A stretch of DNA of 64,000 nt. Source: Salpingoeca rosetta (lineage: Eukaryota; Protista; Choanoflagellata). Below, piece by piece: positions 44,473 to 50,023 of the stretch; within the stretch, counting starts at the first letter, position 1, and every line of letters starts with the position of its first letter. The stretch is taken from the NCBI GenBank assembly GCA_033442325.1, contig JAWQFM010000012.1, forward strand, positions 1,292,214 through 1,356,213, given 5' to 3'. The notes beneath the pieces were generated by a model. That model searched no databases, was not told where the DNA came from, and saw only the letters and a list, made by a program, of their open reading frames with translations. A program made the translations under genes and the position numbers.

Positions 44473-47400
44473 ATGTCCATGCGCACCATCGTTGACGGGC
44501 TGTGCGCCCGATGCTGTGAGTTTGGTTGACAAACAAGGGGAAGGAGAGGATGTGTGTGTGTGTGTGTGTGTGTGTGTGTGTGTGTGTGTGTGTGTGTGTG
44601 TGTGTGTGTGTGTGTGTGTGTGTGTGTGTGTGTGTGTGTTGAGGGAGGGGTTTAACGTAAGGGCGTTACCCGTGTTACAATTTAACCTTGCTTGCTTGCT
44701 TGGGATGGCATTGTGCGTGTCAACAAAACACAGCAGTCGAGTTGCCTTGCTTGCTTTGCTTGCTTGCTTGCCTGTGGATGTTGTGCCGCATCGCGTCACG
44801 CTTGATGAACAACAACAACACATGTGAATGAGCGAACGAATGGGGTAATACGCTGGGGTAGCCCTGCTTCTGGTGTGTGTAGCGCAACGACCAACCACCA
44901 ATGAACCCTTGTCTGCTGTGTCGCCTGATTCTGGTTCGTGTGTGCCATGTGAACAGACAAGGCAGCAGAGAGCCGCTGTGGCAAGTGCAAGACGCGATGC
45001 TACTGCTCCACAGCATGCCAGAAGAAGGTGTCATCTGCTGTTCCTGGCTCTAAGCTGGCCTGTCACACTTGCACATGTTGCACGACTGGCCGTGTGCGTG
45101 CGTGCGTAAGTGTGTGCGCGTGCGTCCCTGCTTCCCCCTCCCCCCTCCCAACACGCACACACACGCTCTCTCCCTTCCTTGTTTTCCTGTGTGCAGGATT
45201 GGATGCTTGGCCACAAGTTCTCCTGCTGTACAGATCCACACCCTCCCGTCGCCAAGCATCCACAACAACCATCAGGGTATGTGCGTGTGTTGCGTTGTGT
45301 GTTGCGTTGTGTTGTGTTGAACGTGTATCCTTTGGTGGTTGAACGTGTATCCATTGGTGCGTCCTTTGTTGTGTGCTTGAACGTAAACCTTGCGCTGCAT
45401 GCATGGACGCTGTGCACCCGCATCATGTCACATCACAACGAAACGCGTAACAGGGTGCTCAATGACCCCAGCGTGATTGCCGGCTCCGTTGATGTCCGAC
45501 CTCTCCCAACGACATTGGGCCTTGGTATGTTGCCTCGCACGCGTGTGTTATATGTTGCGAGTGTGAAAGATTTGGGAATGGGCGCTTTGTGGTGCACTGG
45601 AATGCCCTTGTTGATGTGCCCGTTCCATGTGCGCTTGCAACTGATTCCATTACCTATGCGCTGCGGACACAGCCAATGTTGGGAACACGTGCTACATCAA
45701 CGCTGTCCTGCAATGCATCAACGCCACCACCATCTTCCAACGAGCACTCGCATCCCTTCCAAACAAGGTAAACGCATCACACATCGAATCACGGCGGTGC
45801 ACGTTGTTACCGTGAAGAGTGTTCAAGCACAAGCGCAAGATCGCCCGATACATGTACATGTACATGGTGCACGGGGTGCGTGACATGGTGTGTCATGACG
45901 TGGAAGCCGCTCACACGTGCATATCGCCCTTCTCCTTAACTTCGTCTACATTCCGCTTGCTGTTGTGTTCAGGATGAGGAAGGCACGCTCGTGCACAAGA
46001 TGCTTGCGTTGATGGGAGAACTCTCTGGGTCCGATGCTGAAGCAGATCAAGCGGCACCAGCCGCCGTCAACCCCGTGCACGTCGTCCAACACCTTCTCAC
46101 TCTTAGGTATGGATGTGCGGGTGTGTGTGTGTGTGTAGTTGTGCAGGTGTGTGTGTGTTGGGTGGGTTGGCGAGAGAGAGAGAGAGAGAGATTGTGTGTG
46201 TGTGTGTGTGTGTGTGTGTGTGTGTGTGTGTGTGTGTGTGTAGGTGTGTGTGTGTGTGTGTAGGTGTGTGCGCGAGTTCGACTATATCCGTACCCCTGTG
46301 TGTGTGCATCCCTGCGTATGCCTGTTCGACATGCGCTACAGCGCTGACCCGCTGATGTTCAACACCCTCACCCTTCTCCTCACACGTACACCACCCTCCT
46401 CTTGCTGCCAGCTCCGACTTTGTGTTTGGGCGCCAGGAAGATTCGCACGAGCTGTATCAGACGCTGCTGCGCGGTCTTGCCAAAGACATGACCCCCGCGG
46501 GCCACCACCTCCCCGTCTGCGACCAGGTGGGCTGTGCTGTCGTGTGTCCTCGGCAAGGCGTGTGCTCAAGTCGTGGTTGAGTCGTGACTTGGTCACTGGC
46601 ACGCACACCTCACTGACAAGCTCCCGTACAAGCTCACACAAAGTCACACGCGCACACATGCACGACTGCGCCCCACCACGACCTCCTTCAGGAGACGACG
46701 TTTGTGCATCAGCTGTTTGGCGGTACCATTGCCAGTCAGCTCATGTGCCCAAAATGCCAGTACACGTCCACATCATACGAATCATGCTTGGACCTGCAGC
46801 TGGAAATCAAGGAGGAAATCACAGACACGCTTGAGGAAATGCTTGAAGGTGATGTGCCCTGCCGTGTTAGTGGTGTTGTGTTGACACACTGTGGGAGGTT
46901 GTGCCATTGTGAGTGTTGCATGATCGTGTGTGTACGGCCACATGCGCGGGTGTGCAATATTTTCGGTTCTGTGTTCCGTAATCTCAATTACCCCCTCGCC
47001 CCCTCGTCGTGTGCTTGTCTTCCTCACCTCATGCACCTTCCACGCTTGCTTTGACAGCATTCACGTGTCCTGAGAAGCTCGCTGCCGACAACAAGTGGAA
47101 GTGCGAAAGCTGCAACAGCCACGTGCGGTGAGTAGCATTGTCGCATGCACACGCACACACATGTACACATACACATGCACACACACACACACACATACAC
47201 ACGCACGCAGTGCAGTGCACGTCGCTTGCTGTCATTCGTCGTGTTGGAGAGCCACCCACGTTCACTGTCATCCTTCCAGCACAAAGCCCACGCTCACGTA
47301 CATGCACGTGCATATACACGCATATGCGCATACACTCCGGCCACCAGGGCGCTGAAACAGCTTTCTGTGTACAAGGCGCCAAACATCCTGTGCATTCAAC

Positions 47401-50023
47401 TCAAGCGCTTCCGGCTCGGCGTGTTTGGAAAAGTCAACAAGCACATTGCCTTTCCTCACCAGCTCAACCTCAAGGTCGGTGTGTGTGCGTGTGTGTGTGT
47501 GTGTGTGTGTGTGTGTGCGTGTGTGTGTGTGTGTGTGTGTGTGCGTGTGTGTGTGTGTGTGTGTGTGTGTGTGTGTGTGTGCGTGCGTGCGTGCGTGTGT
47601 GTGTGTGTGTGAGTGCGTGTGTGTGTGTGTGAGTGTGTGTGTGTGTGTGTGTGTGTGTGTGTGTGTGTGTGTGTGTGTGTGTGTGTGTGTGTGTGGGTGT
47701 GTGCGTGTGTGTGTGTGTGTGTGTGTGTGTGTGTGTGTGTGTGTGAGTGTGTATGTGCTTGCTTGCTTGCGTGCCCCATTCACACCCCCTGCTATAATCA
47801 CCCGGTCAAACGAGCGAGAAGGCCACCGATTTGCCTGCGGAGAATGACCACCTCCAAAAAATATAANNNNNNNNNNNNNNNNNNNNNNNNNNNNNNNNNN
47901 NNNNNNNNNNNNNNNNNNNNNNNNNNNNNNNNNNNNNNNNNNNNNNNNNNNNNNNNNNNNNNNNNNATACACACACGCTCTCTCACACACTCACAATTCT
48001 GCCTCCTCACAGGCCGTGCTTGACAAGACGGGCACTGTGATGGTTGGATCGCCAAAACTCGCGTGTGTGTGTGGTGTGTGTCGTGTGTGTGTGTGTGTGT
48101 GTGTGTGTGTGTGTGTGTGTGTGAGTGTGTATGTGCTTGCTTGCTTGCGTGCCCCATTTACACCCCCTCCCTTATCACCCCATGCTCACGCATGCATGCA
48201 ACCGATTGCTGTCGGCTATGCCTCCACCAGAACTTTATGACGCCTGGGACGCGTGACACAGATGGACTGGAGTATGATCTCTATGCCATTCTCATTCATT
48301 TGGACATGTACAACCTCACTTCCTTTGGCCATTACGTCGCCCTCATCAAAGGCAGCGACGGCGTCTGGTGTGTGTGTGTGTGCGTGTGTGTGTGTGTGTG
48401 CGTGTGTGTGCGTGTGTGTGTTCCACTTGCTGTATCAACACAATTTTTCCATCGCATATTCTCTTCATCTGTATCACCATATGCCGCTACCAACTGCTGA
48501 TGCTGTGTTGTTTCTGACTGCCAGGCGCCTGTACGACGACAGCAAAGTGCAGGAGGTTGAACGCAACGTCATTCCAAATGTCAACCCATACATGGTTGGT
48601 GTGCGTTGGGGATGGCTGTCAGTTTCGTTTGTCTGTTTATCTGTCTGTCTGTTTATCTGTCCGTCTGTCTTTGTCTTCACTGTGACTTGTTTCTCATGAC
48701 CTTGTGCACTCGTAACCATCATCCCCATTGCATCAGTTGTTCTACAAGCGCCGCCACCCCAACCTGCCCTTGCGATTGCCCCTCCTTCAGTTTGAAAAGG
48801 TGCCCTAGAGTTGCTTGTGGTGTGTACGTGCGTGCGTATTTGTGATTGCGTGTGATTGTGAGTGAGAGAGAGAGAGAGATTGGCTTCACTTACTTATTCT
48901 TTCGCCATTCCACTGGCCTTGCAGAGCACAACAACGTCGTCACCAGCTGCACCGCCAGCTGTGAGTGGTCTCAGTTTCCAAATGTAACGCTGAAATGTGC
49001 TGTGTTGTGTCAATGAGTGGCATTTGTCGTCCGTGTTACCGTTGGGGGTTTGTCTCATGCGTTATTTCGGCCCTCGCACGTACTCATTCCACGTTGATGC
49101 CTACCCTCATCACGTGTGCGTGCAAGGGTATGTGTGTTGCGGGGTGTGGATTCTTTGGCTCGCCGGCAACGCACGGCTACTGCTCAAAGTGCGTTCACTC
49201 GGGCCTGGAAGAAATACATGCACTCACATGGCCATGTGCTCTGATTCAATGCGTACTCGCAGCACTCGGCTGTACCAACACGCACGACAGTGTGCACAGC
49301 CAGCCTGTCAGGCTTACTCACGCACGCACACGCTCGCACAAACACGCACGCTGTCTCACCCTGTGCGGAAATGCAGGTGCTTCAAAGACAAGTATGGCGA
49401 CAGCCCACCTCCGCCACCCGCCGATGCTGCAACGCAGAGGACAGGTGAAGCAAGCGACGCTGATGATGATAACGATGGTGATGAGGCAGGCAAAGTTGAT
49501 GATGTCGGTGCAACAGCAGAGACACCAACACAGGCAGAACCAACACAACAGAAGACGCAAACCACCAATGACACAAGGGAGAGCGAAGCCTCGCCTACGA
49601 AGGAGGAGAAGGAGAAGGACAAAGACACCACGCTAGTAGAGCAGCAGCAGCAGCAGCAACAGAAGCAGAAGCAGCAGCAGCAGCGGGGAACGGGTGAGCC
49701 ACGGCCCAAGACGAAGCAACAGCCGCAGCAGCAGAAGCAACAGAAGAAAGCTGGTGGAAATGGCACTGCCCGCAAGTCGTCGTCGTCGTCGTCGTCGTCA
49801 GCCAAAGCGCCGGCAGCCAAGGTGTGCAAGAGGAAGCGAGGGGGTTAGAGGGAAGCGGGGAGGAGGTGGTGGCGCCGTTTGTGAAGATATGGCAACTCAC
49901 TCTCGTTTGCGTTTGCCTTGTGCGCTGTCATGATTGCACGCTACGAAACCTCAGAGGATTGGTCGGAACGACCCTTGCCCGTGTGGCAGCGGGCGCAAGT
50001 ACAAGAAGTGCCATGGCAAGTAA
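44473..50023 (+). CDS. Ubiquitin-specific protease with zf-MYND, USP (C19), A20-type zinc finger and C-terminal SEC-C motif
   Basis: MYND: CARCY|KAAESRCGKCKTRCYCSTACQKK|DWMLGHKFSC. Cys box GLANVGNTCYINAVLQC; GRQEDSHE; LKRF; His box HLDMYNLTSFGHYV; YDDS; LFYKR. A20: CVAGCGFFGSPATHGYCSK|CFK. Last exon RIGRNDPCPCGSGRKYKKCHGK*. Confidence 0.92.

Follow-up and report, generated by a model that had tools for sequence, protein, structure and literature searches.

A gene at positions 44473–50023 of the 64,000-nucleotide stretch of Salpingoeca rosetta DNA analyzed here (the window) was found to encode a protein, PTSG_07000, in which a MYND zinc finger, a ubiquitin-specific protease (USP) core, an A20 zinc finger, and a SEC-C motif follow one another. 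The gene is expressed, and its product is very probably an active cysteine deubiquitinase of the USP class that belongs to the old MYND-USP lineage, with roles of the individual modules that we infer below. A first-pass annotation of the window had placed all four modules in frame on one mRNA, and this was borne out by the exon chain, by RNA-seq junctions, and by matches to four Pfam families above their cut-offs.

Gene structure, domains, and transcripts

The gene lies on the + strand, as do all features described below unless stated otherwise, and consists of 17 exons and 16 introns, all of which are of the GT-AG type and each of which is 125–756 nucleotides long. Exons 1–6 are located at 44473–44515, 44957–45027, 45197–45276, 45454–45524, 45673–45767, and 45973–46106, exons 7–12 at 46412–46526, 46692–46848, 47058–47127, 47348–47474, 48231–48367, and 48525–48594, and exons 13–17 at 48737–48799, 48925–48960, 49127–49188, 49377–49821, and 49955–50023, respectively. 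These boundaries were chained by hand, and each one was checked. The spliced coding sequence of 1845 nucleotides encodes 614 amino acid residues and ends with the stop codon TAA at 50021–50023. Many introns of the gene are filled with (GT)n, and the G+C content of the window is 55.5%.

The full 614-residue protein was scanned against Pfam, and the score of each match was compared with the curated cut-off of the family. The zf-MYND finger (PF01753) was found at residues 11–48 (44503–45226, exons 1–3) with 30.6 bits against a cut-off of 22.7 bits, and the USP/UCH core (PF00443) at residues 87–393 (45518–48745, exons 4–13) with 171 against 23.9 bits, covering profile positions 2–254 of 254. The zf-A20 finger (PF01754) occupies residues 425–447 (49130–49386, exon 15 and the first codons of exon 16; 40.0 against 21.6 bits), and SEC-C (PF02810) occupies residues 596–614 (49964–50020; 40.6 against 20.4 bits), which are encoded by the phase-0 terminal exon 17 (49955–50023). 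The two are separated by a low-complexity linker of about 150 residues (448–595; 49387–49963) that is rich in Q, K, D, S, and P. Matches were also obtained with single-exon pieces for zf-MYND, for UCH (five exons), for zf-A20 (43 bits, E 4e-11), and for SEC-C (47 bits, E 2e-12).

The RNA evidence consisted of two raw stranded RNA-seq runs of S. rosetta (X21 and X22) and two contig sets, which were mapped on 44350–50250. In keeping with spliced RNA, about half of the words in the stretch occurred in the contig sets. Nearly all first mates were on the − strand, indicating that the gene is transcribed from the + strand. Twelve of the 16 junctions were found as listed GT..AG joints at the boundaries of the model, with 1–24 reads in X21 and 11–65 reads in X22 in addition to transcript contigs, and the remaining four fall at masked repeats. 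Exons 6–7, 10–11, and 16–17 were joined by adjacent contig coordinates. For exons 11–12, eight reads carried the last letters of exon 11 running onto 48525, and for exons 16–17, 44 + 4 reads carried the last 30 letters of exon 16 running onto exon 17, as did contig X4 record 4. Raw stranded reads crossed the joints of exons 13–14, 14–15, and 15–16 with 4 to 46 reads per run, the last of these joints being crossed by 11 + 46 reads. No joint skipping the A20 or the SEC-C exon was among those listed in the RNA-seq reads and contigs. The A20 and SEC-C exons are spliced into the same mRNA as the MYND-USP part, and transcripts ending before these exons, for which the first-pass annotation had proposed an RNA-seq check, were not shown by the data.

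We considered whether the model is an artefact in which a small A20/SEC-C gene of its own, or alternative last exons, had been wrongly attached to a USP gene. The gene upstream ends only 95 nucleotides before the ATG of the USP gene and one RNA contig crosses both, so that contigs alone can merge neighbors; the corresponding model of Monosiga brevicollis is itself fused to Raptor; and read-through of intron 16 leads to an in-frame stop after eight codons, which makes an isoform without SEC-C possible. Against these points stand the raw reads that span exons 13 to 16 and link exon 16 to exon 17, and the orthologues from Choanoeca flexa and Salpingoeca punica, which are complete open reading frames from transcriptomes and repeat the four modules in identical order. 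Because of these junction reads and transcriptome orthologues, a wrongly fused model is extremely unlikely, and we retain the single four-module gene.

Intron 10 (47475–48230) contains an assembly gap at 47867–47966 together with long (GT)n tracts. The gap is flanked by a near-duplicate segment (47740–47803 and 48120–48180) with 94% identity over 120 nucleotides, microsatellite included, and since the near-duplicate is present on both flanks, the gap is probably a collapsed or duplicated microsatellite-rich repeat of the assembly. The gap does not reach into the coding sequence, and every exon is present. In RNA contig X8 record 6, the spacing from exon 8 to exon 11 is exactly 197 nucleotides, which equals exon 9 (70) plus exon 10 (127), and exons 10 and 11 follow each other in a transcript contig without any letter in between. 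The alignment to human USP36 is likewise unbroken across the gap, from FPHQLNLK at the end of exon 10 to NFMTPG at the start of exon 11.

Several observations concern the surroundings of the gene and the mapped reads. The stop codon of the upstream gene, which is also on the + strand, is at 44376–44378, and read depth drops about eight-fold at the boundary between the two genes (44376–44473). The spanning RNA contig and this drop in depth suggest that the untranslated regions of the two genes overlap or abut. Over the 3′ part of the USP gene (48684–50250, − strand), reads of opposite orientation were observed at a depth of 1–9, and a CT..AC joint from 49203 to 49359, which equals a GT..AG intron on the − strand, was present in the contigs of two runs. 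This antisense RNA is probably the tail of a convergent − strand gene with an open reading frame ending at 50408. A few reads connect 45172 and 48879 on opposite strands; both positions are at CT/GA-type simple repeats in introns, and these joins are most likely a mapping or library artefact.

Catalytic core and its placement among USPs

The catalytic residues of the core could be assigned by alignment to human USP36. Cys95 in GNTC95Y (45690–45692), His355 in GH355Y (48330–48332), and Asp371/Asp372 in YD371D372 (48535–48540) align to this enzyme, as do the zinc-ribbon residues Cys222/225 (46746–46757) and Cys271/274 (47102–47113). The catalytic residues were invariant or nearly so both among 13 and among 48 relatives. 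Judged from these alignments, PTSG_07000 has kept an intact catalytic triad, oxyanion region, and USP zinc ribbon, all of them conserved, which agrees with the earlier statement that the catalytic Cys, His, and Asp are preserved.

An AlphaFold2 model was built on 48 relatives, and its mean predicted local distance difference test (pLDDT) score was 79. The pLDDT was about 96 for the MYND finger, mostly higher than 90 for the USP core, and about 80–90 for the A20 finger and SEC-C. It was lower than 50 at residues 462–525 and 550–590 of the linker, and a helix was predicted between them at residues 529–546 (49631–49684) with a pLDDT of about 84, forming a Q/K-rich run inside otherwise disordered sequence. 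The top Foldseek match of the predicted model was human USP36 (8BS3, E 4e-30, TM 0.87), pointing to a fingers-palm-thumb fold, and the sequence alignment to the same structure had an E of 1e-46. USP36 (8BS3/8BS9) is thus the closest solved structure, with aligned catalytic residues and zinc ribbon, whereas it belongs to another clade, as described below, and has no MYND, A20, or SEC-C module.

A protein with this many fingers could in principle be a catalytically dead pseudo-deubiquitinase that serves only as a ubiquitin-binding scaffold, and non-catalytic multi-finger readers of ubiquitin such as ZNF216 do exist. However, Cys95, His355, Asp371/372, the Cys-box, and the His-box are all intact and are invariant or nearly so among the relatives. 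Because the catalytic residues are intact, we regard a dead enzyme as very improbable and an active USP as the better reading.

The placement of the core was examined with a maximum-likelihood tree of 47 USP domains and 317 columns, for which clade support is given in parentheses. The four-part proteins, the plant UBP15–19-like proteins, and the chlorophyte MYND-USPs formed a clade of 31 rows (95/99, starred), and animal USP36, plant UBP23/25, and the fungal enzymes formed a separate one (97/96, starred). Within the MYND-USP clade, the named choanoflagellates and two marine environmental sequences formed a starred group (97/87), the other environmental four-part sequences fell into an unresolved comb, and plants and chlorophytes formed a starred clade of their own (99/91), so that the choanoflagellate group was not nested inside plants. 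When the choanoflagellates and animal USP36 were forced together, the cost was 128 log-likelihood units, and this arrangement was rejected by the approximately unbiased (AU) test (p 9.5e-6), for which the hypothesis had been set earlier and the exact rows were fixed after the tree had been seen. The His box HxDxxN...GHY was carried by the majority of the four-part members and by the majority of plant and chlorophyte MYND-USPs; no sequence checked from USP36, UBP23/25, or fungi had it. The other motif that had been taken as a plant signature, LKRF..G.FGK.NK, is shared by PTSG_07000 with chlorophyte MYND-USPs.

These sequence comparisons support the assignment of PTSG_07000 to the MYND-USP lineage of plant UBP15–19, and the earlier proposal that the core is of this type and not of the USP36/42 type was upheld by the tree, the His box, and the AU test. 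A zf-MYND finger is regarded as the defining mark of plant UBP15–19 (PMC11236618). PTSG_07000 shares with these proteins the zf-MYND before the USP core, the starred clade, and the His box. The plant proteins differ in being longer (approximately 730–1080 residues), with C-terminal extensions that contain neither A20 nor SEC-C, and PTSG_07000 is a choanoflagellate protein in which MYND begins as early as residue 11. Among the MYND-type USPs, Arabidopsis UBP15, UBP16, and UBP19 are the studied members.

Two other memberships were tried and rejected. The USP36/USP42/USP17 group was ruled out by the separate clade and the AU test. The A20-like OTU deubiquitinases (TNFAIP3 and OTUD7A/B) were ruled out by the class of the protease, which is a USP; no OTU family was among the Pfam matches of the full protein at E values up to 0.01.

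Horizontal transfer from an alga or a plant into choanoflagellates would explain the plant-like catalytic domain. The closest named relatives outside choanoflagellates are from streptophytes and chlorophytes, no animal MYND-USP of this clade was found among the search matches, and a preprint describes many algal-like genes in S. rosetta. On the other hand, the gene has 16 spliceosomal introns and a host-like composition, it is present in several distant choanoflagellates that do not group inside plants, MYND-USPs occur in oomycetes as well, and the gene was not found among the entries listed in the accessible part of the supplement of the preprint on horizontal gene transfer in S. rosetta. Taken together, the number of introns (16), the occurrence across choanoflagellates, and the absence of nesting inside plants make a recent algal transfer improbable. 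The tree does not separate a gain of A20 and SEC-C in this branch from their loss in plants. Since the source is a choanoflagellate and thus neither a plant nor an animal, the evolutionary reading of the plant-type core changes from that of the first-pass annotation.

Accessory zinc modules and relatives with the same layout

The N-terminal finger aligns to the MYND fingers of SMYD2, DEAF1, and ETO. In ETO, DEAF1, and SMYD proteins, this type of finger binds short motifs rich in proline.

The A20 finger begins about 30 residues past the USP core and has the ligands C426, C430, C442, and C445 in the pattern C-x3-C-x11-C-x2-C. Its best matches among solved structures were Rabex-5 (2FID and 2C7M, which we take to be Rabex-5–ubiquitin complexes), followed by ZNF216/ZFAND5, with E values of 2e-7 to 4e-7, and the A20 fingers of TNFAIP3 matched less well (E approximately 2e-3). 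The GCGFFG of the finger aligned to GCGYYG of Rabex-5, and F432 was invariant among the relatives. By these sequence criteria, the finger is of the Rabex-5/ZNF216 type, a ubiquitin-binding class, and is a putative ubiquitin binder. Structures of the Rabex-5 and ZNF216 A20 fingers have been solved with bound ubiquitin, and the Rabex-5 finger acts in a context of endosomal recruitment. The fingers of Rabex-5 and ZNF216/ZFAND5 share the pattern and the core of GCG, a di-aromatic pair, and G with that of PTSG_07000, whereas they are N-terminal and are carried by a Rab5 exchange factor and an AN1-finger proteasome cofactor, respectively; the finger of PTSG_07000 is C-terminal to a protease. A20/TNFAIP3 and Cezanne/OTUD7 follow the same logic, in which a cysteine deubiquitinase is followed by at least one A20-type finger, but they have the OTU fold instead of the USP fold and A20 has seven fingers, so the likeness is an analogy and not a membership.

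The SEC-C ligands C600, C602, C611, and H612 form the pattern CxC-x8-CH, and 19 of 22 residues were identical to the zinc-domain peptide of Escherichia coli SecA (1SX0). The tail that carries them is highly basic and sits at the end of the disordered tether of about 150 residues. The same ligands are found in the C-terminal metal-binding domain of bacterial SecA and also in YecA and YchJ. In bacteria, the ligands of the SecA zinc domain are SecB, ribosomes, and lipids, and not ubiquitin, and to our knowledge SecB has no eukaryotic cytosolic counterpart; the SEC-C of PTSG_07000 differs from the bacterial domain in being the spliced terminal exon of a nuclear gene. As the first-pass annotation had stated, Arabidopsis OTU7 carries SEC-C, and A20 and Cezanne are OTU enzymes (PMC3950621). 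OTU7 (At5g67170) is likewise a deubiquitinase with SEC-C C-terminal to the protease, at residues 313–333 (PMC3950621), but its protease has the OTU fold, SEC-C stops short of the extreme C-terminus, and MYND and A20 are both absent.

Relatives were retrieved from a representative library with a piece of exon 8 (46692–46847) as the query. The matches included full-length relatives but not the protein of S. rosetta; when one of these relatives (P0019) was used in a word search, P0152 was obtained. The spliced model is letter-for-letter identical to P0152 (XP_004992408.1, EGD74763.1, UniProt F2UDR3), which is named "hypothetical protein PTSG_07000 [Salpingoeca rosetta]" and the gene of which was placed on a 1.37-Mb scaffold of strain ATCC 50818. 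The order MYND-USP-A20-SEC-C was found in C. flexa (P0206), S. punica (P0019), and M. brevicollis (P0010), and also in environmental or archive sequences from Logan (P0036), Tara Oceans (P0151), and ENA (P0154). Salpingoeca urceolata and several metagenome or transcriptome sequences contain fragments or variants of it. The positions that were invariant or nearly so among 13 aligned members comprise the cysteines of MYND, the catalytic residues, F432 and the four cysteines of A20, and the SEC-C ligands; the linker was not alignable among these orthologues.

The layout is therefore that of a conserved small family and not a one-off. Nor is it a unique domain shuffle: at least four choanoflagellate species and several other eukaryote sequences have kept it. 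When the 13-sequence alignment was used for a profile search, the best 8000 candidates yielded no additional four-part member, and some members of the alignment were not re-found; since the search was limited to these candidates and missed some known members, the range of the family is under-sampled. A whole-protein search of the ESM Atlas gave no cluster of at least 50 members with the layout, and the nearest large clusters were MYND-USPs of streptophytes and oomycetes.

The earlier suggestion that the protein is possibly undescribed requires some qualification. A search of about 8.4 million papers and preprints by accessions, by the domain combination, and by choanoflagellate together with these Pfam names returned no paper on PTSG_07000 or on this layout, and MYND, A20, and SEC-C are unmentioned in the text of a survey of ubiquitin-system architectures (Grau-Bove et al. 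2015, PMC4327156). The gene model, however, was public beforehand, and the RefSeq and UniProt entries (PTSG_07000/F2UDR3) already carried these Pfam matches. PTSG_07000 is an annotated yet unstudied member of the USP family, the accessory-domain layout of which was not found described in the literature search.

Some of the related sequences showed gene-model features of their own. The M. brevicollis protein P0010 (MONBRDRAFT_27441, 1846 residues) is a four-part protein up to approximately residue 600, followed by Raptor_N at residues 629–777, HEAT, and WD40; it is very likely a merged gene model, in which the orthologue is fused to a neighboring Raptor homologue. On the JGI metagenome contig Ga0590115_0024843 (1–700), a gene of 439 residues was called as USP-A20-SEC-C without an N-terminus, and pieces coding for MYND and the Cys-box lie just upstream, unannotated, in other frames, and split by short introns. 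These upstream pieces suggest that the source organism also has a four-part gene. Two contigs that encode environmental four-part proteins have compact genes with introns absent or short and GC contents of 63% and 42%, unlike S. rosetta.

Proposed roles of the modules and significance

We propose that the four modules could act together in the following way. The N-terminal MYND finger would recruit partner or substrate proteins, and the USP core would cleave the ubiquitin isopeptide bond. The A20 finger may add a second ubiquitin-binding site, because of its GCGFFG di-aromatic signature and its likeness to the Rabex-5 and ZNF216 fingers, and could thereby give preference to chains or to certain linkages. 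By analogy with the bacterial SecA domain, the very basic SEC-C knuckle on its flexible tether might serve to anchor the enzyme on, or direct it to, an acidic surface or a partner such as the ribosome, RNA, or a membrane; this is the weakest step of the proposal. Chain selectivity, "ubiquitin editing", and convergence with OTU enzymes, which the first-pass annotation had suggested, are put forward here as hypotheses.

Several points weigh against this reading. Enzymatic activity, as well as the binding of ubiquitin by the A20 finger and of metal by SEC-C, is a prediction from the protein sequence. The structure prediction has low confidence in the linkers, and the reach of the A20 finger to the catalytic site can therefore not be judged from it. 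Among the relatives, SEC-C is absent from P0155 and the A20 finger is weak in P0158 and P0207; because some relatives have lost or degraded one module, the accessory fingers are not indispensable. In Arabidopsis OTU7, SEC-C has been called only "potentially nucleic acid-binding" (PMC3950621).

The enzyme may also be active while A20 and SEC-C serve localization or autoregulation, at the endosome or membrane or at the ribosome or RNA, and not the handling of chains. This assignment is less probable but has several observations in its favor: the A20 finger of Rabex-5 is known from endosomal recruitment, the SecA zinc domain does not have ubiquitin among its ligands, the SEC-C tail is highly basic at the end of a long disordered tether, and some relatives do without one module. 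On the side of chain handling, the A20 finger keeps the GCGFFG of ubiquitin-binding fingers and is always placed directly after the core in the relatives. A role in localization or autoregulation is thus a live alternative; the two kinds of role are not mutually exclusive and are not distinguished by the present data.

A broader reading, to which we give a low probability, is that PTSG_07000 represents an ancestral deubiquitinase of holozoan or older origin that was lost in animals, in which the A20 finger would confer trimming selective for linkage or chain length and SEC-C would dock the enzyme on ribosomes, RNA, or membranes. If so, it would be a USP-based counterpart of the editing enzymes that combine OTU with A20 fingers, and it would provide the first functional role for SEC-C in a eukaryotic cytosolic protein.

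At present, PTSG_07000 as a MYND-USP with two extra zinc modules is a well-supported annotation and an evolutionary curiosity, and not a new mechanism. Its interest is mainly evolutionary: choanoflagellates keep a "plant-type" MYND-USP, of which no animal version was found among the searches, and it carries two extra zinc modules that are known in model organisms on OTU-class deubiquitinases (A20/Cezanne and Arabidopsis OTU7) and not on USPs. In S. rosetta, the gene can serve as a tractable test case. Should the SEC-C tail target the enzyme, a first handle would be gained on the role of this bacterial-looking motif in eukaryotes; should the A20 finger tune the handling of chains, the influence of accessory ubiquitin-binding fingers on USP specificity could be studied in a simple natural system.

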